Shown here: positions 9,887 to 41,487 of the stretch, in pieces
Numbering within the stretch: position 1 is the first letter of the stretch
Layout of the letters: the number at the start of each line of letters is the position of its first letter
Assembly: GCA_964019335.1 (NCBI GenBank)
Contig: OZ025741.1
Span: forward strand, 62,001 to 126,000
Direction of reading: 5' to 3'
Length of the DNA: 64,000 nt
Origin: Diplonema japonicum
Taxonomy: Eukaryota; Protista; Euglenozoa: Diplonemea
Position numbers and translations under genes: made by a program
Notes under the pieces: model-generated
What the model was told of the DNA's origin: nothing
What the model saw: only the letters and a program-made list of their open reading frames with translations
The model's database searches: none

Positions 9887-12181
9887 TCAAATGTTCGAAG
9901 GCCACAGAGCACGGATGGCAGTAGCAAGCTGGTCCCAAGTCATAGTGACAGCTGTACCCTTGTCACACTGATTGCCCAGAGGCGAATCAAGGACGGGTTC
10001 GGAACCAGAAATTGTCACATAAGTCGTTCCGGTGAGCGAACCAAGGTTGCTCGGCCCGCACACCTGCGCCCCATCGACCATAGTGTTCTTCGTGAAGTAG
10101 TCTGTGGGGAAGCCAGTGACCTGGAACCACGGCTGGGCCTGCACCATGATGTTCCCCGTCATGTTGCGGTAGTCCCCATCACGGTACTTGAACCCCCCAA
10201 GGAAGACGGTGTTGAAGGCGTCCTCGTACTGGCTGGACCCATCGTCATGATCAACGTTCCACCCAGCAGGCCCGAGGAACATGTTGTGCACAAGGCGGTT
10301 GACCTTGGGCTTCATACACATTTCAGACGGTGCGCCAACACACGGGAACACCCAGTCTCTACGGTCCCAGCTGTTGAAGGTACCGTGGTCGCCTGTCTCC
10401 GTAACCATGTTGAAGACAAGGTTTCCTTGGAGGAGGTCGCCGCCCATGAAACCATCGTTGAAGTTGAACCCTGCACGCGGCCCGTTGTAGCACACGTTGT
10501 TCTCGATAACATTGGCGTGGGTCACACCCTTGAAGAAGCACGACGTCTGCTTCATGTAGAACCCAACGGTGTCGATGAGGTTCCCGCTGAATGTGTTGTA
10601 CTCTGGGATGCTGTCGGTGTTGCCGAGCGCAAGCTTCGTGGACCCGACAACGAGGAACGCAGAGTCGCCTGTCCTCCAGAAGTTGGAGTTGGTGACAGCG
10701 GAGTGCTTCACGTAGTTTGAGAAGAAGACTGCGTTCCCACCCAACTGGTCGAACCCCACACTGTCAATGGTGACCCTCTCTGCTCCGTCTACAAACAATG
10801 CAGCACCACGGTGCACGCTCCAGTCACCACCTGAAGGTACTTCATAGTCTTGCAGGTATGTCGGTGATGCGCGGGTTACGTTGACCCCCTGCAGGACAAT
10901 GTCGTGGGCAGGTGATGCTGCGGTTCCCCTCACGGACCATAGGTACATGTGCTGTGGGACTTCTACAACCGCCTGACCGCTGAGAAGGCTTTCTTCTTCC
11001 ACAGTGTCCTTCGGGAAGTACTTCAGCACCCTTGTCGTCTCGTTGAAGAACCATTCGAGCGGTGCGTCGAGCTCCTCCGCAACGTTCTCGACGTAGAACC
11101 CACCGCACCCGGTGTCGCCCCTTGCCTCTTGGTTCCCGCCGCGGGCGAACTCGATGACATCTTTGCTTACGGATGACGACTCGAACCCCCAGCTGCCCCA
11201 CCCGCTGGGCTGGTACATCTTCACCACAACACCAGTGGGGTCGGCCCACTTGGCCATGCGTGCTTGCACATCAGGGCTGGTCACTGTCATTCCTTTGATG
11301 GACACGGTGTTCCAGAAGGGGTTGTTGTATGTCTCGTTGAAACGCGTGTTGTAGTAAAGCTGCTGCGTGGTCTTGCAGTTGTTGATGTCTCTGGGAGCGG
11401 TCATGTCGGAGATCACGACATCAGACGAGGAGGCAAGCGAGACGGTGGCGATGTGGGCTCCGGTCTTGGACTTCACGTTGGCGTTGAGGGGGAATTGCTT
11501 GGCGGACGATGTCTCGGCGTGGCCGGTGCAGCCGGAAGCGTAGCCTGACTTCGGGATGAGCGGGTCGCCGTTGGGGTACCTCGCACGAACCCGACGGTCG
11601 CCACTGATGAAGAGTTCCATGAAAGAGCTGACAGTGGAGGGCACAATGCACTGAAGGGTAGCACCTGTAGACTTAGTCCATGTGCAGTTCAACTTTACAC
11701 CACCGCTGACGACGGAGCCCTGCTGGCCCTGCCAAGTGATGGGATAGCCGGGCAGCCCACTGTCTTTATCGGTAAGCTCGAAGGTGCTGGCGAGGTAATG
11801 AGTTCCCTTCATGATGTTAACCACAACGCCACTGCGGATATCCTCCTCTGAGAGTCTTCGAACCATCTCGCGAGCCTTGGGAAGCGACTTGAAGGCGGTG
11901 GACTCGGTCAGACCGTTGGAAGTATCGTCACCATTGGGGCTCACGTAGAAGACCTTCTTCCCAGTGGTGCGGGGGTGCGTTGGCTTGTCCACAGCGGTGG
12001 CCGGACGTGGGCATCCGGACGGGAAGTCCAAAGATGCGTAAACATTGTCGATGGCTTGCTTCCCGCCGATCTTCGCAGCGAACTCCAAAGAAGTCTGCTT
12101 CACAGTGCACTCGTAGCTGAAGTTCTGAGCAGCACACCCTGCCAGCAGGGTCAGCACCACTGGTATCCTCATATTCCCCAT
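9887..12181 (-). CDS. Secreted right-handed parallel beta-helix (pectin-lyase fold, GH141-like) protein
   Basis: Signal peptide MRIPVVLTLLAGCAA; FYVSPNGDD..NG....AFKSL, GTHYL..TFELT..DSG, ELFISGDRRVRARYPN, then beta-helix repeats and ETGDHGTFNSWDR. Confidence 0.75.
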   Translation of the reverse strand: MGNMRIPVVLTLLAGCAAQNFSYECTVKQTSLEFAAKIGGKQAIDNVYASLDFPSGCPRPATAVDKPTHPRTTGKKVFYVSPNGDDTSNGLTESTAFKSLPKAREMVRRLSEEDIRSGVVVNIMKGTHYLASTFELTDKDSGLPGYPITWQGQQGSVVSGGVKLNCTWTKSTGATLQCIVPSTVSSFMELFISGDRRVRARYPNGDPLIPKSGYASGCTGHAETSSAKQFPLNANVKSKTGAHIATVSLASSSDVVISDMTAPRDINNCKTTQQLYYNTRFNETYNNPFWNTVSIKGMTVTSPDVQARMAKWADPTGVVVKMYQPSGWGSWGFESSSVSKDVIEFARGGNQEARGDTGCGGFYVENVAEELDAPLEWFFNETTRVLKYFPKDTVEEESLLSGQAVVEVPQHMYLWSVRGTAASPAHDIVLQGVNVTRASPTYLQDYEVPSGGDWSVHRGAALFVDGAERVTIDSVGFDQLGGNAVFFSNYVKHSAVTNSNFWRTGDSAFLVVGSTKLALGNTDSIPEYNTFSGNLIDTVGFYMKQTSCFFKGVTHANVIENNVCYNGPRAGFNFNDGFMGGDLLQGNLVFNMVTETGDHGTFNSWDRRDWVFPCVGAPSEMCMKPKVNRLVHNMFLGPAGWNVDHDDGSSQYEDAFNTVFLGGFKYRDGDYRNMTGNIMVQAQPWFQVTGFPTDYFTKNTMVDGAQVCGPSNLGSLTGTTYVTISGSEPVLDSPLGNQCDKGTAVTMTWDQLATAIRALWPSNI

Positions 12182-12748
12182 ATTTCTTCTTTTCTTTCCC
12201 TGTATTATTTGTGTTGGTTTCCAACAACGAGCAAAGGAGGGGGAAGGGAACAAAATTCCACATACAATCAGGGTAAACCACAGAACCAGCGAATAGAAAA
12301 ATGAGCCGGAAGGGGACAAGAGGGGAATAAATGGGTGGGTGCAGCTATTTAAGTAGCTGCGAACGTACTTGTCTCCTCTCCCTCTACACACATCCACCCC
12401 CCCCCCCCCCCCGTCTATCAATATTGAGCAATTCTTTTTTTTTTAAAAAGAACTTGTTCTTTTTTTTATTTGTTCTGAGGGGGAGGGAGGCATTAAAAAA
12501 ATAGTGGGGGGGGGAAATAAGTCGGATCTGATAGTCTATTTATGGCCCTCTTTTCTTTTAGGGGGAGGGGAGGAGACAATCTCTTCTGTTTTTTCTTCTT
12601 TTCTTCTTCTTTTATCTTCTTCCTTTTTTTTTTTTTTCCCTACCAAAATACCAATAAAATAAATTGTTGTCATTGATCAAAGCAAACAAAACCTTAAAAA
12701 AAAAAACTTTTTTTTTGAAAAAAAAAGGAAAAAAAAAAAAAAAAACCA

Positions 12749-15700
12749 TCACACAGCATCAGCGGCAGTAAATTCTTTAAGGCTCTCCGGAGACCTATAC
12801 AACCTGAGTAGCTCTTGATAGAGTGCTGCCTCAAGGCGGAGATCCTCTTCGCACCGAGAGTAGTACATGCATAGAATAAGATATTCGACAGGCCGAGGAT
12901 CTTGCATGTCCTCAAGGATAACCTTGTAGGCGGACCCGACGAAGAACGAGCGTATCAGACGGCCTATAGTCAACACAAATGTGGTGTAGAGGGCAGTGAT
13001 ACTGAAGGACGCCAGCAAGGACCCAAGCCCGCTATTATCCGCCACCGTGTCGGAAGCGACAAGAAGGAAAAGACTCTTTGCTTGCATTGTTGTGCATCGG
13101 CTTGTTGCGGAGTCGTACTCCGGACAGCCCGACCATCTGTAATGTTTCGATCTTGAGTAGCACTCTGCCTCGTCCTTGCTGGGTGCGAATGCAGCGTCCA
13201 AAGGGTTGCCATTCTCGAAAAGTGAGTCGCAGATGATTTCGGCGCTGAACCCTGCAAACTCCCCGCATTGCTTTCCGGTCCCGTCGCATGAGGAGCTCAT
13301 CTGCACTTTGCAGTCGATCCTTGCCGTGTGGCGCGGGTCGTAAAGTTCAAGGTTCTCCCTCCTGCTGAAAAGGAACGGGGAGTAAAAGTTAGGCAGCTCT
13401 GCCGACACGGTGCCGTTCCCGCTGATCGCCTCGCTTAACGCCACCCGCGCAGCGTGTGGGATCGTGTACCGAGCACGCTGCTGCACCTCAAGTAGTGATG
13501 CTTGGCTCGCCGACTTCCTTGTAACCGTCATGTCGATTGATATCTCAACAGCATGCGGCATTGCAAAGATGTCCTCCACGTACAGGTCTTGTACCTTATC
13601 CGGTGTTACGGGCACCACGTTGCTTGTATTTGCCAGCTTGTCCCATAGTGCTAGACCGGCGCAGCATGGGTCTACTTGGACGTCATCGCATTTAGTTGAT
13701 GGGCAGCGTGTGCCGTCTACGGCACACCCCTTTGGTCCCAGGACGCTGTTTTGCATCATCATCCGAGCTTCCTGAAACGTCAGCGCGCCGTCGTTGTCCG
13801 TGTCGAACTGCCGCACCACCTCCATGGCCTCGGATGTGTTCCACAGTTGATTGATGATGTTCTCCTTCGCGTGGCTCGTGATCCACCACACTGTCTGCGA
13901 GCTTGTGGGCAGTTCGCTCAACTGTACCGTCTTGCCTTTGTAATCAAACCCCTGTGCTGCAGGTCGTGTGAGCTGGACTTCACGCAAGACTCCGTCGGGG
14001 ACGCCTCTTCTGTTTGTTGATGGCAGCACATCGCGCCCGGTGTAGAAGGGCGGTGCCCCCACAATGCCCACCTCCATGGTCGCGTGCTCCACGTAGTTGT
14101 TGGTGAGCGCTGGTGAGAAGCTGGAGTAAAACATGAGCGGGAAAAAGATGATGACCACCAGAACGATGGCCACAGTGCAACCTTCAGATGCTTTGATGCT
14201 AACGGGGAGCTTCTTGTCCTTCCCAATGTCCTTGTTCAGCAACCGGGTCTCTTCAAGGTCGCACCTCGCGAGGTACAGCTCGTGGCTGATGTCCTGCAGC
14301 TTCACCCAGTACTTGAACTTCAGCGTCGTGGTGGTGAAGGTCCAGTCCAGTACCACTTTCAGCTCGTAGACGAATGGTACAGCTCTTGCGACTTGGTAGA
14401 GATACGCGAAGAAAGGGTGATGTTTGTTGTGGAAAAAGTCGGGCCGCATGGTGTAGCCTTCTCGTAATTGCGCAGCGGAAATAAGCAAATAAAGAGCCTT
14501 GATGCAAAACAGGGCGGACACCACACGGACAGCTTGCGCTGACCCGAACGACGTGATCACATACTTGGAGTCGATCTCCACTTCAGCAGTGAGCCGCGAC
14601 GCTGACCACCACGAGAAGAGCCCGAAGTACAGCCCTGTGAGGAACACCTGGAAGATGAACTTGACAAGGATCTGTTGGTACAGGTACAATATCCTGTCAA
14701 CGATGATGATGACGAGCAGTATAAGCTGCGCCACGACGAGCGACCCGGGCAGCATGTTGTTGCTGAGGGACGCCGCAAGGTCGGTCTCTTCGCCGTCACC
14801 GATCGAGTAGTACGAGAAGATGAACATCACAAAGGCAACAAAGTCAACGATGAACATGAAGCTGTAGTAGTCCGCTCCGATCTTCAACTTGTTCCCGTTC
14901 AGCACGTTGGACTGCAGGATATGTAGCACTGAGAACGTCGCCTGTGCGGATTCTTCTTTTGCGGCTTTCGCGGCAGCCAAGGCGCTCCCCCCAGCGATGG
15001 GGATGTCGTGTTCGATTTTTGCGAGTTCTGCAAGCCTTCCTAGATCGCGCAGCCCTGCGCCAACCTGCTCGTCGGGTAACGAGCCACCGCAGCCATCTTG
15101 GTCACGGATTGTGTTCCCTTCGCTGTTATAAAACATGTGGGTTACAACCTTCGGTGCGCCCGCTGCTACACGCTTCATCAGAAACCTTCCGTTTACAGTG
15201 TACTCGACAACTACTTCGGGATGCACCACCAGATTGTCGTCGACCGTCTCCTCACACTTCAGGTGTGTAAGGAGCACCTCGTCCATCTTCTCCGCCTCAT
15301 CCGGCACTGTCTCCTCCTCGTAGTGGTAGCTGAGCGATGCGTCTGACCACAGCCCCATCGTCTCCAGTAAGTGGCAGTGGGTTAGAATGGCCAAGATGCA
15401 CAGTAACTCCAGGATAACAGCGTCCATAAGATTGGTGATCGCACCAAACAGGAAGGGTTGGTACAGCTGGATTTCATCGAACCAGCCCTTCAGAAGACTA
15501 AAGGCGGCAGCCTTAAACGTGACTTCCGCGTAGAGGAAAACAAGGCACCACCTCCAATACTTGATGTGGGGCCTGGGGTACATGACTATGGCGTAGACAC
15601 AGACGGAGATGGGAAGGGGAAGGCTCAAGTAACAGGGTTCCCTGATGAAGTCGACGAAGAAAAGCATGTAGCACAGCTTGTCGGTGTTGGACTTCAGGAA

Positions 15701-18700
15701 CCACTGCAGGGTATCCCAGAACTCGGCGTATCTTCCTGTGTACGATGCAGATGGCCTGGCGTGCGAAGTAGTTCTCAGCAGCCCGGTGAGCTCGTCGATG
15801 AACACGTTCAACACGTAAGAGTAAGGCAGGATGCCAAACTCGTTGTAAGCGGTGGTGTCGTGCGATTTCTTCCTCCCCTTCACGATGAGTTTCTTCTCCG
15901 TGCCCTGCGTGCCAGTGATGAGAATTGTTGATATCGACTGGTCGTGCATTGGCTTTCGGGGGATAACCAGAAGTGATTGAGACTGCGACCTGCCTCCCCA
16001 CCCAGAGACGTCTAAGGGAAGCGAGGACGGTGTCCCCTCCGAGCATGAATCGTCGGAGACATACTCTGCTGCTAAGGGGCTCTTCTTATCCTTCTTGTCC
16101 AAGAAATTACTGGACAAAAGCCTCTCCTCTAAAGGAGACCGTGGGGGCCGCGGTGACCCTGCAGGTGGAGGTGACGTTGCTTGCACGTAGTCCGACGACA
16201 CCTCTACAGCACACACACCGCACAGCTCGTCATCTTGCATTCTAGCGCACGTTGGGCAAATCGACACTTCAGCTGACGTGTACCCCAACCGAACGCCCTT
16301 CAACTTCAACGCTCGTTTCTCCTTTTGGCTCTTCAGTTTCTTCTTCTCCTCGTCCATTCGCGACAGCCACTCCTGCTGGATTACCTCCCCAAACTCCATC
16401 CTCTTGATCTCTATCTCCTGATCATAGTACAACATCCACACCCAATCGTGATTGCAGTAAATGCGGCCCATCACATAAGCAGCACCCATAATGACAGCGT
16501 GCATGCCGAGCGCCTTCACACCGAAATGCCTGTAGAACCCCCCGCTGTCTATGTTCTCTTCAATGAGAGGAAAGTACAGGAGACACGTGGTGAAGAGGAA
16601 GGTGGTGTACAAGTAAGTGACCCACCTCCACAGGTTGTTGCCTTTCCATCTGAGGATGTTACTGTTATGGAGCAGGTACATAGAGGTGAGGGTCTTGCAG
16701 AGGTCGACAAAACCAGGCTGCTCAGGCTGGCAACCATCGATGAAGACCACGGTTAAGATGAAGAAGGGGAACACGAGGTTGAAGAAGAAGCGGAGTCGAT
16801 CGAGAGGTGTGCGATGACGTTGCGAAGATGGGGTAAAGTCGCGTTCAGGATGCACATTGGTTGCTGCGCTGCAGGCAGTGCAGCCACAGCCAGGAACAGG
16901 CAGCCCGCCTTCTACAGAGATCCTATGAAGGTCTCCGTATGGATACGGGACTCTTTGGACGCCAAACACTAAACTGTACACCGTTAAGATTGCCTTCTTC
17001 GCCTCTTGAACTTCTTTCCAATGTTCCGTCAGAACCGCGGATGTGGTTCTCTTGCTTGCTTCCCATTCCGCCTTAATGTCGTCCCCCCTCTCCCTCGCCC
17101 TGCGGTAAGCCACGAGCTGTGTTACAACACACAACGCCACCACCACCTCCACCGCAAGTTCCATGGGCACTACATCGACACTCAAGTAACCCCGCCACAG
17201 ACCCAACGACTCTTCGTTATATGGCAGCTTCCTCTCGGTACTATCTCCTGGAAGCCCCAAATATGTTAAATACTGTACAACAAGGACCAGCCACGTCACG
17301 ACTAGGACACCACGCCATCTTTCCAACCCGCATCCAATAGGAAGTGCCATGCCTTCCCTTTCAAGGGCCAAACACGCGACTAGGAGTGCGAAGTAAATGA
17401 GGGCTCGAAGGGTGTCGGGCTGCAAGCAAATAGCAATGAGAAAGGCGAGCATTGAGGTTTCAAAACCAAGCGCGTCCATGACAAAAGCGGGATTCTGCCC
17501 TATGAGCAAGAACAGCGCCTTGCCCCGTCGCACGAGGTACCCCACGGCGTACGCAACGTGCACTCTCGTGCTGCTGTCAGGCATGGGGGGGTCCTCAATG
17601 GCTTCAACTATTCCCGTGGCGGAGTCGACAAAGCCCTCTTCTTTCCAGCCCTGCGACAGGGTAACGAGGAGGCCCGTGATGTACGCTATGGTATAGGTCC
17701 ACACAACACTCAGGATGGTGCCCCCGAACCGGAGGCCGATGTAGGCAGCTGTCACAGTGCTATCATTCAAGTTCTCGCCGACTACAGGGAATTGAAACAC
17801 GATGGACATCAAGGTGACAAGGAAGGAGTAAACGTTGAATGGCGCGTAGATCTTATTACACATCTCGGGGGAGAACTGAAAGACCCCAAGCACTGCAGCA
17901 TACGGGATCGAGATCAGAGTGGAGCGGTACCCAGACGAGCTGTACACAGCCGCCAAGAAGAGCGCAATGACCAACGCAGTAGTGCTGTAGGCAGCCATCA
18001 GCCTCTTCACTACAATATTCACCTTTTTGCGTCTTTCCAGAACTTTTTCTGTAAGGGGGTAGCTCCAAGACGTCGCACCCACTTGCAACTGAGCTACCAC
18101 CATGACTAGTATTAAGGGAAGCAGTCTTTTGAAGGCCCGGAGGCTCCCACCGTCGTTCTTCACGACAACATAAGCGAGTCCAACGTATTCGGCAGAGATG
18201 CCCATGCTGTCGAAGGCGGAATCGAAAGCGTCCTTGCACACGGACCATTGGTAGAAGTAGAGAAGTATTGCCCACAGTAAGGTGACCTCCCTGGTGATCC
18301 GCCACCCAATGTTGCGTTGGTAAGGGGTGAGGTTCAGCCCGCGGGGTGTCATGCACATGGCAGCGAGCGCCATGAACATGCAGTATAAAATACCAGACAG
18401 AACGCTGGGCGGGTGCAGCCCAGAGACGAGCATCAGCACGACCAAGGCAAACAGATCAAGCACAACACCTGGCGGCACACCCGTCACACACGCGATGGCG
18501 AAGAACACCCTGTACCTGATGCGTGGCTGCGGCGGGTGGCTAGGGCGTACAGGGGCGTCAGGCGGTGTTAAAGGATTGTTTGGGGGTGTCTGCAGCCTCA
18601 GTTCTTCAAGCTCTCTCATTTCTTGGACATTTTCCTGTGAACGAAAAGTCTTTTCTTCTTTTTTTCTTTCTTTCTCATACCTCGTGCGTCTTCTTCTCTT

Positions 18701-21068
18701 TATGAATGCTCCACTGCTTGATGCTGAAGAACAGAGACAAAAACAACGGGAAAAGCTGCCACGCGTCGCTGTCATGCAGACCGACGACGTCCTGCAAGGC
18801 AGTCCGAGCAGACTGTTTGTTGTGTTGAAAAAAATCAAAAGCTGAGAAAAGTAACGCCCCTATCTCTAAAACCCGTCTAGTCAATCCTTGCTCTAAAGGG
18901 GCTATAGAAGGAACTTTAGGAAGATTCTTTTCTCAAGAATTCCAGCGTTCAAATCATGCAAGAACTAACCAAGTAGCTAAGACCTTCGAAGGAAAACCTC
19001 TTTGTGGAATTTCCAACAGAACGGGTACCGGACGGGTTTTAGAGATTTGGGGTGTAACGAAAAAGAAACATACCGCCATCGCTGGGAAGAAATCGCGCTC
19101 CAAGACGTTGAATAAGTACAGAAACGTTAACAGAATCGAAACATAAGTCAAAAGGTAGGGCCACATAGGCATGGCCAAGGAAGGGCGGTAGAAGAGGAGG
19201 AGGCAAGTGAGGAAAAGAACCCCGTGAGCACCGTCGATGGTCCAGCACGATGCGAAGAACAATGTCGACATGCTGAGTGCGATGAAGCAGCGATGGTAGA
19301 ACCTTCTCGCACCTATTACCACTGAAGACGTTTCTGCCTCCTGCCTACCTCCTCGTCGTCTGAAGTTTATGTACAGCCGCTTTGTGAGGCCGATGAACAC
19401 CAGCAGCAAGCCCAAGATGGGCAGCATCACCATCGTGCAGCTGCTGGACCCTAACCCCCCGCAATTCGAGATGGCGAACCCTGCAATTTCTAGCCGTCTC
19501 TGCAGCGCAGACGTGTTGTTGCTTGCGGTGTCCTCGTAGTGCCTGGACGCAGCCACACCCCATACCCCCACTACATGTATCACAGCAAGGCACAACGCTG
19601 GTGTTAACAGCTCGAAGAAGGCGTGCTTCCTCATCATGGACATCAAAAACAAGATAAGCCACACCGACGACACGACCGACGGCAGCAAGATGATGATGAG
19701 TGTGAGGAGCACAACGAGGATCCTGCTGCAATACCTGTGCGAATTCGTGACGAGGAGGTTGATGACTCCCTTGGTGATCTCACCGGTCCGCTTTTCCGCG
19801 TACGCGCTAAGTTGCGAAAAGTCCCCCACATCAGGCAGCCTCACCATGCGAATGAGCTCTTTAAGCTCTTTCTTCGACATGTCCTTGATGACAGCCGTGA
19901 GGGACATCATGCCTTGCAGCGTCGCGTCCAGTGGGTTGATTGAAGACCCTGGGTTGTTCATGTCCACATCGTCTATGTCGAGGCTCCCCTCGGTAGCCTC
20001 ATCGCCGGACACAGTGTACGCGCAGAGGATGAGGTGCAGCACAGCAAGAAGGATGACATGCACTACGTTCTGCACCTCGAGCTCGACGCCGCCTTCCTTT
20101 CCATGAGAGTCATGCAGCCACGACACGCCAAGGACCTTGTAGATCCCCGAGTCAGGGATCTGGTCCGCCAAGTACGGCACAAACGTTGTATAGTGCGCTG
20201 TGATCAGCACTGCGCAGTACCGCCTGAACCCCGTGACCCATGGCCGTGACGGCGAGAACAGATGGTACCCTCGCTGCCGCGACCAGTTGACGCAATACGC
20301 GACAAAGACAAGTAGCAAGGGGATGTCCAGCACGGCAGGGTGGCTCGCAGCGCTCATCCCACTCAAGACCGCCACCACAGAGAAGCTTCTCACTTTTGCA
20401 CTACTGTTCACCGTTTCTGGTGCATCGCCCGTGTCCTTTGCCAGACGCTTCTTCATGGTGCGGAGGAGGATGGCAACGCAGACGAGGACTAGTTCAGGGA
20501 CGGTGCACTTAATGCGCCCCCAGGCTGTAGAATCACGGAAAGAACATAGACCAAGCAGCTCTGCCCATGTTGAGTTGACGAACCCACGCTGGGAAGATGT
20601 CATTGCTTGGAGGGCTATTTCCGTGATGATCTGGGAGAAAAGGGAGAGTGCAGCGGTAATGCCTGCAACGTAAACAGTAACGGAGCACTTAGACACAGGG
20701 TCCGTGGGGACAATGCCCGTGAGGTAAGGGTGGGTAGTTGCGGCAAAGAGAAAACACATGATATAGATGGCTGAAACGAGATTGAGGCGGAGCATAGGGA
20801 CGCCGATGAAGAGGAGCGGGCTGATGCCAGCCAGCCACGCGATCTTCTCCTTCGCCAGCTGGATCTTGTAGTAGTCGCTGGCTACATTGATAACATGCTC
20901 TGACCTGCTAGTAGACCTCCCACGGACTCCTTGGCTCCCCGCACGCGATCGCCAGTCTGATAGAAGCTGAGCAGCTGCCTGCATAGGGGTCTTGCAGTTC
21001 CCATTGTTCGCTGTGAGACTTGCCTCATCAAATCTGATGTATGGCACGTGCTCACGCGGAGAATCCAT
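12749..21068 (-). CDS. PIEZO: Piezo-type mechanosensitive ion channel, ~2670 aa; exons 19074-21068, 18681-18812, 12749-18634
   Basis: Many TM helices; Piezo anchor signature PFVYELKVVLDWTFTTTTLKFKYWVKLQDI; QLREGY; outer helix IIFFPLMFYS; inner helix ITALYTTFVLTIGRLIR; C-terminal LLRLYRSPE; two phase-0 GT-AG introns join the two long ORFs. Confidence 0.9.
18855..19054. mobile_element. 200-bp MITE-like element inside Piezo intron 1
   Basis: Imperfect TIRs CGCCCCTATCTCTAAAACCCGTC / GACGGGTTTTAGAGATTTGGGGTG, flanked by TAA on both sides; no coding capacity. Confidence 0.75.
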
Positions 21069-21255: not shown

Positions 21256-21793
21256 TTCGGTTGCAATAACATGCGAACTCGTTATGGCACCACAGAGTGC
21301 CTACTGGATATCACTCACGGCATCGTGAAAGCGCCGGAGGATGCACCAGGCAAGGGCGGCATCAACAAGACATCACATCAAGTATGCAGAGACCAATGGG
21401 GAGGGGGAGGAGAGGACGGCGGATAAAAAAAGAAAAATTTCACTTGATATTCAGAATGCAAACATGGAATAACATTATCTTGCTCTGCATGGAAATTGTA
21501 GAAAGGAAGAGGGGGGAGGGGGTTCGAAGGGAGACAACGGGGGAAAAGGCGTGGACGAACGAAAGAAGGGAAAAAAAAAAAAAAAAAAACCAGAACACAG
21601 TTTTCTCTTTTTTTTTTTCCCTTGGTAAAGAGGGGTGCGAGGGGGAGGGGAGGGGAAAAATATGTTTTTCTTTGTGAGAAAAAAAAAGAAATATCATTGA
21701 TTACAATGGTTTTCTTTCTCATTTCTTTTTTTTTTTGTTCTTCGCGTAAGGGATTTGAAGAAAAGGATACTCCCTTTTTATTTTCCCTATTTT

Positions 21794-24700
21794 TTACTGC
21801 CGCTCTTTGGCTGACAAGTTCTCCTCAGCAGGGTACGGCATGACAGTCTCACGCACTACACGGTGGAGGACGAAGCACAACGAGATGGTGAGCATGCCCC
21901 AGGCGTAGATGGTGAAGGCCCAGGAGTAAGAAGGCCTGGTGATGTACTGCAGCTCACCGTGAAGAAGCGCCATGCCACCACCACGCGACTCCGAACGGGC
22001 AGATTCGTCCAGGAAGAGGCACCCGTAGGTGTTGGTAGACATCTGGTTGGTGTGCGCCCAGGCCGCAAGCACGAGGATCCACGCGAGGGTCAAAAACGCA
22101 GCCGACACAAAGATCATCTTCCCGAAGACAGCATGATGGGGCAGGAACGAGTACAGGACCACAGCCACCATACCAATGCCAAGGAACAGTGTCCCCGACA
22201 CAGCAAGCCCTGCAACGGTCTCCATGTCGCCCTCGAGGTCGCCCTTAGGGCAGACATCGCCGATCTTGCGACAGTTGTCGCCGCCTTCAAAGGTGGAGGT
22301 CTTGGGGAAGGCGCACTTCGGGGCGGAGAAGTCGGAGAGCGTCACGTCCATCTGCACAACGTGCACCTTCGAGTGCTCTGCGAAGTCCCCAGACTCAGCC
22401 AGCACAACGGTGTGCGAGTTCGCGATGAACATCCCCTCCACAGAGCCGCCGGTGATCTTCTCCGCAGCGCCCTCCACGCTGTTCACGTCGAACACCTTCT
22501 TCGTGGTCACCGCCTTGATCCCTGCCGCAGCGAGGTTCACAGCAGGGTTCAGGGCCAACGCACCCCCAGCCACAACCACCCTCTCGATGGAGTCCAGCGT
22601 CGCATCGGAAGCAATGTTGGTACCGGTGGAGAAGTCGGCCTCCCTCAGGATTACGGAGACGCCTGCGGGGCCGGACGTCGCGCGCTCCATCAGCAAAACC
22701 TTGTCGTCGCTCAACCAAGCAGCGGCACTGAAGCGCACGTCGGCCTGGGTGTTCGTGGCGTTCCTGAGCGAGGCAGGGTACTCACCCTCGGCGTCGCTGA
22801 GCAGCACCACCTTCTGCATGATGACAGAGGGGTTGGCGTAGTCGGTCACGTTCAACATGATGCAGCGCACGGCATTGGAGTTCAGCAGCGTTGCGTCCCC
22901 ACCGGTCAGGGGCGACTCAAGGCAGGCAACCACCTTGTCCTTGTCAGCGTTCACAGCGAGAGAGCCGAAGCCCCTGCCAACGCGTCTCTGGCGGTAGATG
23001 GCTGGGATCACGGCCTTCACGTTAGCACCACCCCCAAGGGCAGCAGCGTCCGAGGTGTAGATGGCCTGGATCTCACCGGCAGCGTTCCAGATCGCGATCT
23101 CGGGACCGAACTGGTCGGCACCGATGAACATCCCCTTCCCGAAGGCCTGCACGTCGCCCATGTTCAGCCCGAAGCTGGCAGGGGTAGCCACAACGGTGTT
23201 AGCGGGGCAGGTAGCGACGGTCCAGCCGGCGGCACCCCCGACGCGGGTGACCTCGTTGTCGGTCGTCGAGAGGCCGGCGAGGACGTTGTTGCCGCTGTAC
23301 TTCAGGTTCGCCCAGGAGTCGACGTGCACGACGGTAGAGGAGGCTTCGTTGGTGTACGTGTTGCCCAGCCTCAACTTCGCAACGGCGGGGGAGAAGCCCT
23401 GAAGGGCAAGCACGGTGGCGCCGTTGCAGTCAGCAGAAGGACCGCGGCCGGTCATGGCGTACAGCTCACCGCTGCAGTAGTCGTAGGTGAGGCCGCTGAG
23501 GCCAGGGGCGTCGTTGCAGAAATCACCGGTACCGGTGGCGCAAGGCTGGCTGCAGTTCGTGCAGGTCAGGTCCGTGGTGAGGTCGGGGTTTACAGTTCCG
23601 GCAAGGGGCTGGGCAGGGAGCGTGTAGCTGGTGAGCTTCTTCTTGGAAGAATCAACGAAGTGGTTGTCGTGGGGGAGGACGTTCACGTCGCCGGAGCTCA
23701 CCTCGTTGGCCAAGCTGAAGTCCCACGTAGCTCCGTTCTGCTCTTGCTCAAGGACGTGGAAAGTGAAGCTTTTCAGGGGCTTCATGCACCTCTCGGCGTG
23801 TCCGGCCCTTGCCTTGCAGGAGTTGATCTGGGGGCACTCCACAGACCAAGCGTGCGACCTGCAGCCCGCCTGCGTGCACCTCGCCCACGCGTTGCTGTAC
23901 ACCTCATCGGACTCGTAACCGGCACTGCAGCTGAGCTCCAGTTCGGAAGCGCACTGGGCAATGAAGGTGGCGTTGCAGTTCTGCGGCTGCGAGGCGAAGC
24001 TGTGGTCCTTCTTGAAGTCGTCGCTGCACATCTCCCAAAGACCAAGACCGAATTCCTTCCTGCCCCTTTCCTCCTGTGCGTACCTCATACGCCTCCACTG
24101 CGAGGTGGGCAGGGCAAGGGTCATGGCAACGAACGCGAGGATGCACAGACCCCAGGCTCCCGCTGACTGAGGCCAGTCCGACACCGTTGCGGCAATCCTC
24201 TTCGCCTCCTCCTCCTTCAGCCTCATCTCCTCCATGTCAACCTTGTCCTTTTCCAGGTCACCGCCCCACAGCTGCATGAAGTTGGGGAGCTTCTTCCCAC
24301 ACAGCTCTTCGGCCCTGAGGATACTTCCCCTGGTGAGGAGGTCGGCCCTGTTCCTGCGGACCCAGATGAGGACGAGAATGCTGAAGACGATGATGGCGAC
24401 AGGGACCCCGACGGCAACGAGCACCTCCCAACCAGCAATGGAAAGGGCGATGACGAGACCGGGCATGGCAAGGAAGGCAAGCAGAATGTAGGCAACGGGG
24501 AACCAGCGGAGGTTGGCGGCGGTATCGCCCATGAACTTGGCGAGGGCGAGGGGCACGGGACGGAGGGGCCAGATCATGAACCACACCACTGTCCCGAGGA
24601 CGTTGAAGAAGACGTGCTCCAGGGCAACCCTCATCCCAATCACGACGTTGTCGCTCGACAGGGCAGACAGCACACCGGTCACAGTGGTACCGATGTTGGC

Positions 24701-26038
24701 ACCGTGCGTCAGGGCAACGAGCTTCTCAATGTGGATGAGACCGATCCCGACAAGGGGCGTCAGAGTCGAGGTGAAGACAGAGCTGGACTGCACAAGGATG
24801 GTGCACCCGGTACCGAAGATCATCAGGATGTAGTTGTCCAGACCACCGCACGAGCGCAGGATAGGGTGCTTGAAGTCGATGTTCAGGAAGTACCTGGTCC
24901 ACGAGGCAACGCCACCCTTCAGCACGGACTGGAGCAGCTTCACAAGCAGGAGCAGGCAGGTGGTAAGCATGGTGAGGGACACGAACAGCAGCAGCACACC
25001 AGCGTCGTCGTCGGAGATGGGGGTGTCGCGGAGCACGTGACCGGACTTCTGCTTGATGATGGTCTTCTTCTCCAGCTTCTTAACCTCGTCGTTGGAGGAG
25101 GCCTGCGCGATCTTCTCGATAAGCTTCTTGTCAACAGACACCACGCGGCCGGAGGCAGGCTTCGTGATCTTCTTGATGAACTCCACCTTCTCACGCTTGT
25201 CAGTGCTCAGGTTCATCGAGTCCACAGCCTCACCAGCGAGCTCCTTGAGGAAACCGGACGCAGCCTCGAGGGGGAGGAACATCCCCACGGTGAGCCAGTT
25301 GAACATGTCGTGGAAGACGGCACCGGTGAAGGCCCTCCTGTACTCGGCGGGACTGTTCAAGTGAGCAATGGACACAATGGTGTTGGTGACGGAGGTACCG
25401 ATGTTGGCACCCATCACAAGGTACGCTGCGTCCTCAACGCTGACAAGCTCCGCTGCCGCCATCGAGATGACGATGGACGTGGTGGTCGACGAGGACTGCA
25501 TCAGCACCGTGGCGAGGATACCGATGGCGAGCCCTGCAACGGGGTTCGACAGCAGCTCGCTCTCACGGAAGGCCCTCCCGGAGGACTTCCCGCCGAGGAT
25601 CTTGAAGGCGTTCCCCATGAGCCCGAGGGAGATGATGAACATGTACAGCACACCCCAGATGCTGCAGAACTTCACGAAGTTCACCACAACAGTCTCAACC
25701 TTTTCCAGGGGGGTGAGGAACTTCCAAGGTGTGCCCGTGTCAGCCATGGCCTGCAGGGCCCACACGTCCCCCACCGTCTCGTACTCTGCCCTCGTCATGA
25801 GCTTCAGAAAGGCCTTCTCACACTCAGCTTCACAGTCGAAAGGGTCCCCACCCAGGATGTCCTTTCCCATAGGGCACTCCCTGAACTTCTCGTAGTCCAC
25901 GAAGCACGACCCGTGCACGTAGTAGCGGTCCCCTGCCTTCCATGCCTCGTCTGCCTTTGCCTCGTCGGGAATGGGCTCCGTGCTGAGCTGCGGTGCCTCC
26001 CCCTGAGGGGTTTCTTTTGGATGGTCTTCTTGCGTCAT
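21794..26038 (-). CDS. SLC34/NptA Na+/phosphate cotransporter fused to a claudin-like 4-TM module with an inserted phytase-like domain (1414 aa)
   Basis: Two SLC34 repeats QSSS...GANIGT; then TM + W...GLGLWEMC; PF13449-like motifs GLSGLTY, GRGP, DQFGP, RGFGSL, LESPL, MER, VEG; three further TMs with YSW before the last; intronless. Confidence 0.8.
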   Translation of the reverse strand: MTQEDHPKETPQGEAPQLSTEPIPDEAKADEAWKAGDRYYVHGSCFVDYEKFRECPMGKDILGGDPFDCEAECEKAFLKLMTRAEYETVGDVWALQAMADTGTPWKFLTPLEKVETVVVNFVKFCSIWGVLYMFIISLGLMGNAFKILGGKSSGRAFRESELLSNPVAGLAIGILATVLMQSSSTTTSIVISMAAAELVSVEDAAYLVMGANIGTSVTNTIVSIAHLNSPAEYRRAFTGAVFHDMFNWLTVGMFLPLEAASGFLKELAGEAVDSMNLSTDKREKVEFIKKITKPASGRVVSVDKKLIEKIAQASSNDEVKKLEKKTIIKQKSGHVLRDTPISDDDAGVLLLFVSLTMLTTCLLLLVKLLQSVLKGGVASWTRYFLNIDFKHPILRSCGGLDNYILMIFGTGCTILVQSSSVFTSTLTPLVGIGLIHIEKLVALTHGANIGTTVTGVLSALSSDNVVIGMRVALEHVFFNVLGTVVWFMIWPLRPVPLALAKFMGDTAANLRWFPVAYILLAFLAMPGLVIALSIAGWEVLVAVGVPVAIIVFSILVLIWVRRNRADLLTRGSILRAEELCGKKLPNFMQLWGGDLEKDKVDMEEMRLKEEEAKRIAATVSDWPQSAGAWGLCILAFVAMTLALPTSQWRRMRYAQEERGRKEFGLGLWEMCSDDFKKDHSFASQPQNCNATFIAQCASELELSCSAGYESDEVYSNAWARCTQAGCRSHAWSVECPQINSCKARAGHAERCMKPLKSFTFHVLEQEQNGATWDFSLANEVSSGDVNVLPHDNHFVDSSKKKLTSYTLPAQPLAGTVNPDLTTDLTCTNCSQPCATGTGDFCNDAPGLSGLTYDYCSGELYAMTGRGPSADCNGATVLALQGFSPAVAKLRLGNTYTNEASSTVVHVDSWANLKYSGNNVLAGLSTTDNEVTRVGGAAGWTVATCPANTVVATPASFGLNMGDVQAFGKGMFIGADQFGPEIAIWNAAGEIQAIYTSDAAALGGGANVKAVIPAIYRQRRVGRGFGSLAVNADKDKVVACLESPLTGGDATLLNSNAVRCIMLNVTDYANPSVIMQKVVLLSDAEGEYPASLRNATNTQADVRFSAAAWLSDDKVLLMERATSGPAGVSVILREADFSTGTNIASDATLDSIERVVVAGGALALNPAVNLAAAGIKAVTTKKVFDVNSVEGAAEKITGGSVEGMFIANSHTVVLAESGDFAEHSKVHVVQMDVTLSDFSAPKCAFPKTSTFEGGDNCRKIGDVCPKGDLEGDMETVAGLAVSGTLFLGIGMVAVVLYSFLPHHAVFGKMIFVSAAFLTLAWILVLAAWAHTNQMSTNTYGCLFLDESARSESRGGGMALLHGELQYITRPSYSWAFTIYAWGMLTISLCFVLHRVVRETVMPYPAEENLSAKERQ

Positions 26039-26868: not shown

Positions 26869-27822
26869 TCAAGCCACTCCCAGCGACTTCAACCCTTCTT
26901 TTATGCAACCAATGAGAAGCTTGCTCCCCTCTGCAGTGGGGTGCAGGGCATCCGCCATTAAGTCTTTTTTTTTTTTTTCTTTTTTTTTCCCCTCCCGCAA
27001 CATACCTTCACGAATCTTCCCGTCCCCAAGGAACGGCTCCGTGCAGAGAGAGACGTGGGTGGAGCGCTCACATTCAAAATTCTCTTTAATCGCTTCGTTG
27101 ATCTTTCCTATTGCTTCTGTGTACAAGTTGTTCGGCCAATTATAAGTAGGGGGTTTGAACGACTGCCCACGAGGCAGCAACCCCACAATGACCAACTTCC
27201 CATTTGATTTCATGGAGCAGCGCAGCTGATAGATAACATCAAGCAAGCGTGTGATGACGGTCTGTGCTGCGTCATCTACTTGCGATTTTGTCAAAGTCGC
27301 TGATGACAGAGGGCTCCACCACCCACCTACGTGAGGCGAGATAAGCTGGCTCAGATCATTGGTTCCAATGTGTAGAACCACGGATTTTGCTTTTTTAAGA
27401 ATCTGTTTCTCCCCGTGGTTGAGCCGCCATTGGAGGTGGGCGGTTTGATCACCGGAAATTGCAAGAACTATTTTCTTCGATGTGTTGAAGGCTTTGTTAA
27501 AAACGCTTGGAATGCCCTCGCATCGTGCTGACGAGCATTTTGCGTCACCGCCAGCAGTTCCCCGGAACGCTTCTGTAATACTGTCACCGAGGAAAACCAC
27601 ATCGTACTCGTTTTTTCCTGTTGCAACCTCGTAGGCGAGCTTTCTTTGAAACTTTCGCCACTCGTTATTTCTGTCGCAGCCGGCGCACTTAGGGAGCGGT
27701 TCTACTAAGAGGTTGAAGCAAATGACCACCAAGGCTAGCAGGGTCACGATGATGGTGGGCTTCATCGGTAATTGTATTTTATTTGTCGCCTCTGTGAGAA
27801 TCGTGTTGGTACGCCGTATCAT
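26869..27822 (-). CDS. SGNH/GDSL hydrolase (PAF-acetylhydrolase Ib-like) with N-terminal signal anchor; intron 26964-27005
   Basis: VFLGDSIT, AISGDQT, HIGTNDL, GLLPRG, DALHP blocks; 42-nt GTATG...AAAG intron; alternative start at 27765. Confidence 0.85.
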   Translation of the reverse strand: MIRRTNTILTEATNKIQLPMKPTIIVTLLALVVICFNLLVEPLPKCAGCDRNNEWRKFQRKLAYEVATGKNEYDVVFLGDSITEAFRGTAGGDAKCSSARCEGIPSVFNKAFNTSKKIVLAISGDQTAHLQWRLNHGEKQILKKAKSVVLHIGTNDLSQLISPHVGGWWSPLSSATLTKSQVDDAAQTVITRLLDVIYQLRCSMKSNGKLVIVGLLPRGQSFKPPTYNWPNNLYTEAIGKINEAIKENFECERSTHVSLCTEPFLGDGKIREGMLREGKKKEKKKKDLMADALHPTAEGSKLLIGCIKEGLKSLGVA

Positions 27823-29542: not shown

Positions 29543-29881
29543 CTAGTTCTTCTTGCCCTTACCCTTTCCGCCCTTGCCACCCTTCCTGCCCTTACCCTTG
29601 CCCTTGCCCTTACCACCCTTCTTACCGCCCTTCTGCTTGTCCTGCATGCTCCTGAGCTGTTCGATCTGGGTGGTCATCGCCTCCCGGAACTTTTCTTCAT
29701 CCTCACCTGCAATGAGCGCGCACGACTCCGGGGTGACATCATCGAACTTGAAGGGGGTCTCGGCGTGCTGTGTGTATTGTAAAAAAGAAATGGATTGTAC
29801 ACAAACCTTGGCAACCACCTTGCTGGCCTCCTCAGCGGTGTTGAACATCAGCTTGGCTGTGCCTTCCTCAGCAACGCAGAA

Positions 29882-29915
<34 letters not shown>

Positions 29916-30868
29916 TTTCGTTGAACATACCGTGCTGTTGCCACCTCGGCCACTGCTGTCTTGACAACCTTCCACCTCTGCTCCCCTTCGCCAATCTTGG
30001 TGAAGATGACAGAAGCGTCCTTGGGAAGCACAATGGGTTCCTGCTTGGGCTTCTTGGCTTCGACTTCTTCGTCGCCCTCCTCCCTCTTCCTCTTGTCACC
30101 AGCCTCGGCTTCGGGCTTCTTCCTCCTGTCGGCGTTCTGTGTTTTAATTTCAATTTCTTTTTTTTTTTTTTTTTTTTTTGTTGGTACCTCCTTGTCGTGC
30201 TGCTCCTTGAACATGACCACAAGCTTCACGTCGTTGTACTCCAAGCCAGCCTCAACGGCCTTCTTTGCCTCCTCCTCGGTGGAGAACTCAACGTGGACGG
30301 ACTCCTTGTACTTCCTGTTGCCATTGGCGTCCTTGCCAGGGTAGGCACGACGGTTCACCTTGTACACCTTACCCTGCTTTGCGAAGAACTCCTCAAGGAC
30401 ATCGAGAGACACGTCAGTGGGGAAGCCCTTGGCGTAGATGGTGCGCGGGACTGTGTGTGGGTGAATTTTTATTTTTTTTATTTTATTTACACTATATGCA
30501 ACTTGTGCCGAGCAAAAAAAGACATAGTCATAAAGAAATATTATTATTATTATTATTATTATTATTTTTTTTTTTTTTTCCATACGAGGGTTCCACTCCT
30601 TGGGAAGACACTCGGTCCTCCTCACCTTGGTGTTCTCTTCGCTCACCACAAGACCCTCGACACCCTTGAGCGCCTGTGCCAGCTCGGCCACGTCGGTGGT
30701 GATCTTTTTGACGTTGTTAAACGTGCACAGGACCGACAGATCAACCCATCCCTCCTCATTGCTCTTCACCTGCCCCAACAAAAACTTGTCCTCCATGATG
30801 TTCGAGTTCGAGAAGTAGAACCCAATCTGCTTCTGCAGACCCTTAACCTGTTCCTCAGTGATCGGCAT
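29543..30868 (-). CDS. La protein (La motif + RRM + C-terminal RRM, GK-rich tail); introns 30451-30585, 30137-30187, 29883-29930, 29768-29806
   Basis: KQIGFYFSNSNIMEDKFL, GWVDLSVLCTFN, RTIYAKGFP, SVHVEF; low-complexity inserts in the ORF are bounded by GT..AG. Confidence 0.9.
30539..30565. repeat. (TAT)n microsatellite in La intron
   Basis: Direct run of tattattat... Confidence 0.8.
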
Positions 30869-40014: not shown

Positions 40015-41487
40015 CTACAAGGCAACCGATGCCTTCCTGAACTTGCTGCAGATCTCTTGCGTGGTCAGCTTGGTGATCTTCTCAGGGGAGACGACGTGCC
40101 GGAGAAGCCTCGTCCTGAGAGAAGAGTTCTTGGCCTTCAGCTCCGCACGGATAACCTTTATATAAGAGTGGTACGCCTCTGTCTTCCCACCCTTTTCCTT
40201 AAACAGACACTCTTCGATGCCACATGCGATGAGGTAAGGGTTCCAGATAGGTGGTGCGGCTGACACACCAAGGTTTTGGAGTTTTGCAGTGACAGACTGA
40301 GATGGAGGAGTTATAGTCTTGTCGATTATGGGGTGGAGAGGGTGTTCTGCTGAGATATCCTTGGAACTCCACAAGTACTCGCCTTCGGGTTCTGAAGAGT
40401 TCACAGAACTGTCGTCGTAGTCGTCGTCGTCTTCCTCTTCCTCGTTGGGCTCGAGGATCTTCGGTTTTGGGTATGTCATCCACCGCTCCCACTCCGTGTC
40501 TGCTACCTCTTTGTTGTAATCCTGCAGCTCGACGAGGACAGCATCGGCTGTGTTGAGGCTGCAGTCCCCTGTGTCCACCCATTCCCGTGCTGCAGATTTT
40601 GTAGCATTTGTTGATTTTTCAGTTGAAACCCGTTGGTTCTCTTGAAGAGATTTTAACACGTCTTCCGCTTTGTGTGTGCTGCACACCACAACAGGAGTAT
40701 CTGGTGTTTTTGGCATCGTTGTTGGTTCTCCTTCGCCGGCGACGAGTTCTTGTTTCTGAACCTCGTTGGGCGAGAAGGGAAGCGAGGCGGTGGATGAATT
40801 GATGAGATTATCATAGAGCCGCATTCTACATGCTAGCCTTGACCTGTCGCTGTAGTCGTATGCTAAGGGGTTCACTTCTGGGACAGGCGACTCGATTCGC
40901 TGTTTTTTTGCTATAGGTAGGTCCTTTGGTGTTGCTCTATTGACGGCCTTTGCTATAGGGTCGGCTTGGCGTGTGAGGACGGAGGAGATCTCTTTATCCC
41001 GTACGTATGCACCGCCGTTGCGCCAGTCTTGGAATTTGGTTCGGAGTTTTCCTTTGGTCATCTTCCCGCCTGTGAAGCTCGTCCGCATGACACAGTACTC
41101 CAGCATTGCGTGGAAGAATGTATCTTCTTTGACGAGAGTTCCTTTGCTGTCCTTGGGCTGCCATTCGTGCCACCAGTCCTTTGCTTTGTTGCACGCTTGG
41201 AACCACTTGGACGATATCGGTCCCCTGTTGTCCCATGTGAAGGCAGGAAGTCCCGCTCGCTTGTTCAGAGTGTGTCGGCCCTTCATCGTCTGGTTGTGTT
41301 GGGTTTCTTTTTATTTTTTGATTTGCTGTTGTGCTCATACCTTCCAGTCGATTTCGACCTGCGACACCCACTTATCTACGGTTTCGTAGAATTTCTTGGC
41401 CTGCGGCAATGTAATCTGCCCCCTGTCCACCCCCGTTTTGACGTCCTGCAGCGTCTTGCACCCGAATACATTGCTCAACGCGGACAT
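40015..41487 (-). CDS. Protein with C-terminal TFIIS central (TFIIS_M)-like domain; intron 41290-41340
   Basis: IACGIEECLF...Y...IRAELKAKNSSLRTRLL..VSPEKITKLTTQEI; upstream exon MSALSNVFG...IDWK joined by a 51-nt GT-AG intron. Confidence 0.7.

Follow-up and report, generated by a model that had tools for sequence, protein, structure and literature searches.

An SLC34-type phosphate transporter of Diplonema japonicum joined to a predicted claudin-fold membrane module with an inserted, degenerate phytase-like propeller

The window analyzed here, a stretch of 64,000 nt on contig OZ025741.1 of the diplonemid Diplonema japonicum, carries on its minus strand an intronless gene for a protein of 1414 amino acids (aa). 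In this protein, a complete SLC34-type Na+/phosphate cotransporter core is followed by a four-helix membrane module with a predicted claudin fold, and the first long loop of that module holds a beta-propeller of the phytase-like family PF13449 that has lost most of the residues conserved in free members of the family. The reading that we prefer, with a probability of about 0.6, is that of a working inorganic phosphate (Pi) transporter with a covalent, auxiliary-subunit-like claudin-fold module displaying a non-catalytic binding or docking ectodomain. In the ocean, diplonemids rank among the heterotrophic protists of greatest diversity and abundance. All coordinates are positions within the window unless a contig is named, and those of the individual features are collected in Table 1.

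The transporter core was recognized in two stretches by the Pfam model PF02690 (Na_Pi_cotrans; E = 1e-28; 100.4 bits, cut-off 29.1), and each of the two inverted repeats carries a QSSS motif (at residues 181 and 417) and a GANIGT motif (at residues 210 and 446). Both motifs were invariant in 14 homologues, across which the core as a whole was near-invariant. In unsaturated comparisons of paralogues, the ratio of nonsynonymous to synonymous substitution rates (dN/dS) of the core was 0.05-0.12. A motif ahead of the first helix, in the region of residues 1-110, is also kept among diplonemid copies. The solved SLC34A2a (PDB 9z60) matched query residues 90-559 with E = 5e-109, so that the full SLC34 core with two QSSS/GANIGT repeats, proposed in an earlier note made from the sequence alone, was recovered by profile, motif, and structure-linked sequence. 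Vertebrate SLC34 proteins (NaPi-IIb/SLC34A2, PDB 9z60) share the two inverted repeats with both motifs in each. They differ in what follows: the chain of 9z60 comprises 646 aa, the match ends near its residue 552, and no membrane module lies behind it, whereas in the window protein the core is followed by a membrane and ectodomain module of 790 aa.

Hydropathy and an AlphaFold2 model agreed on the four-helix arrangement of this C-terminal module (C-module). Behind the first helix (residues 625-643), loop 1 opens with the signature Q-W(648) ... G-L-G-L-W(668)-E-M-C(671), and the next cysteine is found at residue 688; in claudins, the second loop-1 cysteine lies closer to the first. Among the 14 homologues, Q647, W648, R650, Y653, E656, R660, G664, G666, and C671 were invariant. 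The earlier note had described a claudin-like W...GLW..C signature behind this helix; W648, G664, G666, and C671 are kept in all of these homologues, but W668 is replaced in D. papillatum paralogues. Its Cys-rich spacer corresponds to residues 685-751, where most of the 8 cysteines are invariant or nearly so. The three more membrane helices that it had listed were likewise found (1277-1295, 1308-1326, and 1373-1391), the last one preceded by S-Y-S-W (1370-1373). The stalk in front of helix 2 contains the cysteines C1256 and C1263, and loop 2 carries Y1338, C1340, and F-x-D-E in addition to S-Y-S-W.

Helix 1 and helix 2 are separated by ~630 residues without a hydrophobic helix, with 21 cysteines and 4 N-x-S/T sites. 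This long loop 1 would face the outside, because the C-terminus of SLC34 proteins is cytosolic (vertebrate members end in a short cytosolic tail) and the R-R-N-R run behind the last SLC34 helix would stay inside; the cysteines and the N-x-S/T sites, which are located in loops 1 and 2, fit this orientation.

The fold of the module was assessed on predicted structures. A propeller-less tetraspan, P0074, was modeled by AlphaFold with a predicted local distance difference test score (pLDDT) of 83.5 and a predicted template modeling score (pTM) of 0.73. Among the Foldseek matches listed for this model, there were only TARP gamma subunits (E from 7e-3, TM-score 0.60-0.75, target-alone chains). Comparison with 48,161 chains using VIA-align placed TARP gamma-7 first (Z = 15.8, 169/181), together with MP20 (Z = 15.2, 166/166), claudin-15 (Z = 14.3, 171/181), and the Cav1.1 gamma subunit (Z = 14.0); further matches were TARP gamma-3, TARP gamma-8, a designed claudin fold, and GARLH4. 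Nine of the ten best VIA-align matches had the claudin fold (eight natural and one designed; Z = 14.0-15.8, 135-175 residues aligned). In the model of the window's own C-module (pLDDT 81.4), helix 1 is followed by beta strands, by the helical Cys-rich part, and then by the propeller, behind which come one strand, helices 2 and 3, a hairpin, and finally helix 4. The tetraspan part of this model aligned across the insert with TARP gamma-7 (Z = 14.8, 175/181), MP20 (Z = 13.9), and claudin-15 (Z = 12.8), and claudin-fold matches recurred for this model, mixed with propeller matches. The claudin fold for which the earlier note had suggested AlphaFold and Foldseek comparisons is therefore present in the predicted structures. 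Judged by these models, the four-helix module is a claudin-fold tetraspan of the claudin/amastin class that belongs to no defined Pfam family.

With TARPs, Cav gamma subunits, claudins, MP20, and LHFPL proteins the module shares, as predicted, a left-handed four-helix bundle and an outside beta sheet formed from loops 1 and 2, and behind helix 1 it has a motif resembling their W...G-L-W-x-x-C type, the predicted models reaching Z = 14-16 over 160-175 of ~170-180 residues. Several members of this superfamily are auxiliary subunits of membrane transport proteins. They are, however, separate polypeptides of ~160-320 aa with a loop 1 of ~50-100 aa, whereas in the window protein the module continues the chain of a solute carrier, and its loop 1 of ~630 aa holds two extra domains. 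Amastins (PF07344), the surface tetraspans known from kinetoplastids, also belong to the Euglenozoa, possess four helices with cysteines in loop 1, and formed the nearest named clusters in a language-model search (0.87). That search, in which amastin-like and claudin-clan clusters were nearest with scores of 0.80-0.87, provides a lead only. In contrast to this likeness, the amastin hidden Markov model (HMM) misses the fusion genes, and a profile-profile comparison (hhalign) of the module with the amastin-like proteins of the genome reached only 67% probability over 53 columns, from helix 3 to helix 4.

Relatives of the module without a propeller were found in dinoflagellates. An exhaustive HMMER search with residues 600-1414 returned PF13449 propellers and many proteins of 250-600 aa that matched both ends of the query, not its middle. 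The latter represent C-terminal portions or fragments of SLC34 proteins of the dinoflagellate type (~850 aa), which come from Prorocentrum cordatum (CAK0888535.1 and relatives), from MMETSP, and from metagenomes. Tetraspans that appeared to stand alone in a representative search were rejected as such, being fragments of SLC34 proteins, several of which begin inside or just behind the SLC34 C-terminus. When the C-terminal region of the Prorocentrum protein was used in a word-indexed homologue search, it yielded close Prorocentrum-like proteins only.

The dinoflagellate proteins resemble the window protein in their SLC34 core (41-44% identity) and throughout the module, with helix 1, a W...G-I-G-A-W-x-x-C-S motif, the Cys-rich helical loop, a C-R-x(4)-C stalk, three further helices, and the motif of outside loop 2. 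Unlike it, they have no propeller. Databases label them only as sodium-dependent phosphate transporters, a label that conceals an unannotated claudin-fold module of 250 aa, and their C-terminal module is named in no paper that we found. Aligned with the Prorocentrum protein P0029, the window C-module gave two blocks: the Cys-rich subdomain (residues 685-772) matched P0029 residues 528-682 (E = 3e-13), and residues 1256-1395 matched P0029 residues 700-768 (E = 2e-6). The gap between the blocks is 483 residues in the window protein and 17 in P0029.

Because dinoflagellates have the module without the propeller, the latter is best seen as a diplonemid insertion. The insertion site is identical in all fused homologues, hemistasiid and diplonemid, which argues for one early insertion event. 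As far as sequence comparison can tell, the tetraspan is older than the propeller, and the SLC34-tetraspan fusion is wider than the diplonemids. In the proteins examined, the module always followed an SLC34 core, and this held for two protist groups that are distant from each other. One metagenomic protein of the dinoflagellate type, P0080 (1092 aa), has an N-terminal SPX domain followed by SLC34 and the tetraspan in one chain, joining an intracellular phosphate-sensing domain to the transporter-tetraspan pair. A possible induction of the dinoflagellate homologues by phosphorus starvation was also considered, but the accessions of PMC12122900 match none of the proteins recovered, and no link was made.

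The inserted domain covered model positions 5-278 of the 284 of PF13449 (E = 2.7e-13; 50.9 bits, cut-off 27.6), in agreement with the motif order that the earlier note had recognized. In the predicted structure, C-module residues 248-630 are all-beta and form a beta-propeller. Its best solved structural match was the C-terminal domain of YjiK (3qqz; Z = 18.5, 230/243 residues); other propeller matches were glutaminyl cyclases (Z = 16) and NHL and SCAN propellers. Helices flank the domain on both sides and the model agrees, so that the propeller indeed lies within the first loop of the tetraspan, the side of which is predicted to be the outside.

A profile was built from free PF13449 domains, and all recovered proteins were aligned to it. 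The 123 free domains carry five motifs: (i) T-D-R-G-P-N, (ii) G-L-D-x-E, (iii) [DE]-E-Y-G-P, (iv) N-R-G-F-E, and (v) D-N-D-F-G. The counterparts in the window protein are (i) T-G-R-G-P-S, (ii) G-L-N-M-G-D, (iii) D-Q-F-G-P, (iv) G-R-G-F-G, and (v) S-G-D-F-A. In the free domains, the D of the first motif, D and E of the second, E of the third, N and E of the fourth, and D-N-D of the fifth were each present in 90-105 of the 94-113 rows covering them. The acidic replacements that the earlier note had listed for the family motifs (DRGP, D.EG, DEYGP, NRGFEG, and DNDF) were confirmed by this comparison. The fused rows (n = 50) came from D. japonicum, D. papillatum, Rhynchopus euleeides, R. humris, Namystynia karyoxenos, and ENA assemblies, and represent at least six diplonemid species. 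All of them have lost the conserved acidic and polar residues entirely or for the most part, with replacements (Gly, Asn, Gln, Ser, or Lys) that vary between paralogues.

Free diplonemid propellers, in contrast, keep the conserved residues. They include P0036, which has a signal peptide, three tandem propellers, and a C-terminal anchor, and P0048 of Lacrimia lanifica. They share the domain at 39-40% identity, and in a maximum-likelihood tree the fused and free diplonemid propellers formed one clade apart from the other free domains, with a value of 100 in the Shimodaira-Hasegawa-like approximate likelihood ratio test (SH-aLRT). The tree settled neither the order within this clade nor the monophyly of the fused propellers; the common insertion site is a better argument for a single event than the tree.

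In paralogue comparisons, the dN/dS of the propeller was 0.19-0.21; when the window copy was compared with the paralogue on contig C79 (dS = 0.47), the propeller had a ratio of 0.21 and the SLC34 core one of 0.05. These ratios indicate that the propeller is under purifying selection and not decaying. It is also the fastest-evolving part of the protein, with 30-84% identity between paralogues of this genome, and the few positions that are invariant across the 14 homologues include no acidic cluster. A link between PF13449 and PhoAaty, the 'atypical alkaline phosphatase' of phytoplankton, was not relied on, the sources being in conflict: one cyanobacterial annotation equates the two (PMC9846622), whereas PhoAaty is stated elsewhere to have no defined HMM (PMC11098088).

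Taken together, the protein is probably a surface Na+/phosphate cotransporter of the SLC34 type, presumably located in the plasma membrane, whose cytosolic C-terminus runs on into a four-helix module of the claudin/TARP/amastin class. The tetraspan is an old partner of this SLC34 lineage and would act as a covalently attached auxiliary subunit, as TARP/gamma subunits do for ion channels. Packed against the transporter, it could determine how stable the transporter is, to which membrane domain it is sorted, or how active it is. In diplonemids, the first outside loop received a beta-propeller copied from the secreted or anchored PF13449 phosphoesterase-like proteins of the lineage. Since the acidic residues were lost and purifying selection was kept, the propeller is most likely a non-catalytic binding or docking ectodomain, which would be held beside the transporter mouth. 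It might bind phosphorylated or polyanionic ligands, a partner enzyme, or particles and prey.

Several points weigh against this reading. Generic helical bundles reach Z = 12-14 by arrangement alone, over ~120 residues only, so that it is the aligned length, together with the beta sheet and the motif, that carries the fold call. No sequence profile ties the tetraspan to claudins or amastins: PF02690 and PF13449 matched as the earlier note had anticipated, but at E <= 1 no claudin-clan (PF00822, PF13903, and others) or amastin match was found in Pfam for the whole protein and ten propeller-less modules, a PF00822 search of the genome gave no match at the fusion loci, the C-module sequence and a profile of the propeller-less modules found nothing meaningful among PDB chains, and PF07344 found none of the fusion genes, though 11 other loci of the genome pass its cut-off. 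Some paralogues of other species retain one or two of the conserved acidic or polar residues of the propeller. Finally, an active or metal site is assumed for the acidic residues conserved in PF13449, a poorly characterized family. A sequence search of PDB chains found no solved PF13449 structure, and both the role of the lost residues and the loss of activity are thus deduced from conservation.

A tentative alternative is a transceptor, in which the dead propeller serves as a receptor for phosphoesters or some other signal from outside, sensing organic phosphorus or prey-derived ligands, and the claudin-fold module gates, stabilizes, or internalizes the SLC34 core or signals inward. It shares the evidence for a docking ectodomain and would gain from the solved proteins closest to the tetraspan (TARPs, Cav gamma, GARLH4), which are regulatory subunits coupling outside domains to channel gating, and from P0080 with its SPX domain at the N-terminus of the SLC34-tetraspan chain. 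The propeller's rank as fastest-evolving part, down to 30% identity within one genome, would nevertheless be unusual for a conserved small-ligand pocket. If true, the transceptor would be a protist counterpart of TARP-type regulation, for a nutrient transporter and in one polypeptide.

The earlier note had proposed, beside a transceptor, a single-chain machine for organic-phosphate capture and uptake. The propeller would then still hydrolyze organic phosphate esters at the cell surface via other residues and hand Pi directly to the SLC34 pore. The domain is clearly PF13449, its fold is under purifying selection, the fusion sets it beside a Pi transporter, and annotated PF13449 members are induced under phosphorus limitation in the cyanobacterium Nodularia (PMC9846622). 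Yet about nine positions conserved at ~90-95% in the 123 free domains are mostly or entirely gone from every fused copy, in at least six species. The replacements differ between paralogues, which suggests release from catalytic constraint and not a new site, and the scarcity of invariant propeller positions, with no acidic cluster, points the same way. A self-contained hydrolyze-and-import machine is therefore unlikely.

A role in the surface coat or in adhesion appears similarly doubtful. The tetraspan with its variable ectodomain would here have surface tasks that do not concern phosphate, such as contact with prey, substrate, or other cells, or protection, with the SLC34 core as a mere membrane partner. 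Surface functions such as contact and protection have been proposed for amastins and claudins, and the nearest language-model clusters of the module are amastin-like surface proteins of Euglenozoa. The ectodomain is Cys-rich with N-x-S/T sites and diverges fast in a multi-copy family, while some of the free propeller proteins of diplonemids contain several repeats, and P0036 is anchored in the membrane. Against this, the occurrence of the module only behind SLC34 cores in two distant protist groups suggests a function tied to the transporter, and the amastin-like genes of D. japonicum are separate loci.

The least tenable explanation, a mis-assembly or read-through of a missed boundary that joined two or three neighboring genes, is refuted by the uninterrupted frame, the even codon usage across modules, six copies of identical layout in the genome, full-length transcripts in several species, and contigs of independent runs that bridge the junction. 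The minus-strand open frame runs without interruption from 26128 to 21794 (1444 codons), and its first ATG at 26038 gives the 1414-aa protein, a start consistent with D. japonicum transcripts. The single intronless open reading frame (ORF) of the earlier note was thereby verified. A Trinity transcript of this species, P0196 (1417 aa), was 99.4% identical to the window protein over the full length, meaning that the mRNA spans all modules. Full-length fusion transcripts are present in D. japonicum, R. euleeides, and N. karyoxenos, and the proteins closest to the window protein are diplonemid.

The SLC34/tetraspan junction, which the earlier note had singled out for checking, was bridged both by transcripts and by contigs from four public runs of four studies, three of the four without any difference. 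The contigs cover 23993-24572 in three runs and 23993-24473 in the fourth. These are Logan contigs of unspecified library type, which bear on presence and on bridging of the junction, not on expression, transcript ends, or strand. The G+C content at third codon positions (GC3) was 0.82, the highest of the 20 long ORFs of the window (0.53-0.72 in the other 19), as the reported strong bias toward C- and G-ending codons implies, and it was similar across the modules (0.76-0.84). Even and high GC3 fits a long-resident and possibly highly expressed gene.

Some further observations concern the transcripts. Five D. japonicum Trinity 'isoforms' of one component (P0001 and P0195-P0198) are 88-99.5% identical to the window/C94 and C79 copies in differing mixtures, and look like chimeras of paralogous transcripts made by the assembler, not true isoforms. 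In one run, loose contig ends with poly-T (plus strand) lie at 21723-21742, ~55-70 nt past the stop codon, which hints at the poly(A) site of the transporter gene, provided that this run is RNA. Contig depth falls to zero upstream of ~26172 in all runs.

Six fused copies were found in the 62.5-Mb genome, three of them on the window's contig (C94). The second C94 copy, ~196 kb away, is nearly identical to that of the window (100% match over the aligned parts, 1415 aa). The other paralogues are 73-94% identical to the window copy in the SLC34 core and down to 39% in the C-module. In the C81 copy (10400-15900), the longest ATG frame is shortened to 1169 aa, and a separate piece gives the match to the last helices; this copy may be a pseudogene or reflect a frameshift or an assembly error. 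Fragments lie on C12 and C106, and D. papillatum has five copies. The genome search found no PF13449 domain elsewhere in D. japonicum. An unfused SLC34 on C77 is 50-57% identical to the window core and would lend itself as a natural control in studies of what the C-module does. Separately, at least 11 loci of the genome lie above the Pfam amastin cut-off, with ORFs of ~200-360 aa and some in tandem. This diplonemid amastin-like family may deserve attention of its own.

Table 1. Positions of the transporter gene, of its parts, and of related loci in the D. japonicum genome (positions within the window unless a contig, C with a number, is given; C94 is the contig of the window; sides of the membrane are as predicted)
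Feature	Position	Strand	Basis or remark
Whole coding sequence	21794..26038	-	1414 aa and stop, no intron
N-terminal cytosolic region, residues 1-110	25709..26038	-	no hydrophobic segment
SLC34 Na/Pi cotransporter core, residues 111-560	24359..25708	-	two inverted repeats, each with QSSS and GANIGT
Charged cytosolic linker, residues 561-622	24173..24358	-	starts R-R-N-R-A-D behind last SLC34 helix; no hydrophobic segment
Helix 1 of claudin-fold module, residues 623-643	24110..24172	-	hydropathy peak 625-643; helix 26-43 of C-module model
Membrane-proximal outside loop 1, residues 644-684	23987..24109	-	W...G-x-G-x-W-x-x-C signature, beta strands (50-82 of model)
Cys-rich helical subdomain of loop 1, residues 685-772	23723..23986	-	shared with dinoflagellates; helices 91-168 of model
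Diplonemid-specific insertion, residues ~773-1255 (~480 aa)	22274..23722	-	17 residues at this place in P0029
Degenerate PF13449 phytase-like beta-propeller, residues 846-1213	22400..23503	-	inside diplonemid insertion
Stalk, helices 2, 3, and 4, and outside loop 2, residues 1256-1395	21854..22273	-	hydropathy; model helices 669-699, 706-734, 772-799, hairpin 738-763
Short cytosolic C-terminal tail, residues 1396-1414	21797..21853	-	sequence
Fused paralogue	C94:279544-283788	-	genome search
Fused paralogue	C94:239968-243807	-	genome search
Fused paralogue	C79:325619-329875	-	genome search
Fused paralogue	C95:310404-314516	+	genome search
Fused paralogue	C81:11006-15445	-	genome search
Unfused SLC34, 505 aa	C77:266247-267695	-	PF02690 5.8e-25; no tetraspan, no propeller
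Amastin-like loci	C26:568004-568327, C27:556369-556803, C20:513524-513847, C59 (several), C93 (several), C58, C78		PF07344

No paper describing the SLC34, tetraspan, and propeller architecture was found in literature searches that were partly swamped by cancer-fusion and poultry-nutrition papers. The parts are all of known kinds, and it is their combination that is undescribed in the papers found; new here are also the propeller-less dinoflagellate form and the claudin fold of the module, the latter as predicted. The statement of the earlier note that no described protein has this architecture thus stands for the literature searched but has to be qualified in two respects: public entries named 'hypothetical protein', for example DIPPA_19218, DIPPA_19196, and DIPPA_19221 of D. 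papillatum, carry both Pfam domains precomputed, and the SLC34-tetraspan part occurs in dinoflagellates without the propeller.

To our knowledge, this would be the first known case of a claudin-fold tetraspan covalently joined to a solute carrier, the class being otherwise known as separate channel auxiliary subunits or as junction and surface proteins. Plain SLC34 (the 505-aa copy), SLC34 with tetraspan (dinoflagellates), and SLC34 with tetraspan and dead propeller (diplonemids) form a natural series. It poses two questions, namely how claudin-fold modules serve transporters and which function is added by a pseudo-phosphatase ectodomain. D. papillatum is transformable, and genetic tools for diplonemids appear to have been developed, a paper on protist tool development mentioning the group.

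The long ORFs of the window all lie on one strand, and G+C content is higher in coding than in intergenic sequence. Upstream neighbors of the transporter gene on the same strand encode a GDSL-type lipase/acylhydrolase (26869-27822), a La-domain protein (29543-30868), and a TFIIS-domain protein (40015-41286), all on the minus strand and with no evident functional tie to phosphate. Downstream, two adjoining ORFs of the same strand (12749-18838, minus, 2029 aa; 18954-21068, minus, 704 aa) contain C-terminal parts of Piezo (THU9-anchor and cap) plus an EF-hand, as well as a weak match to the N-terminal TM1-24 region of Piezo just below the Pfam cut-off. The pair looks like one gene for a Piezo-type mechanosensitive channel whose frame is interrupted, be it by an intron, by a frameshift, or by an error of the assembly.

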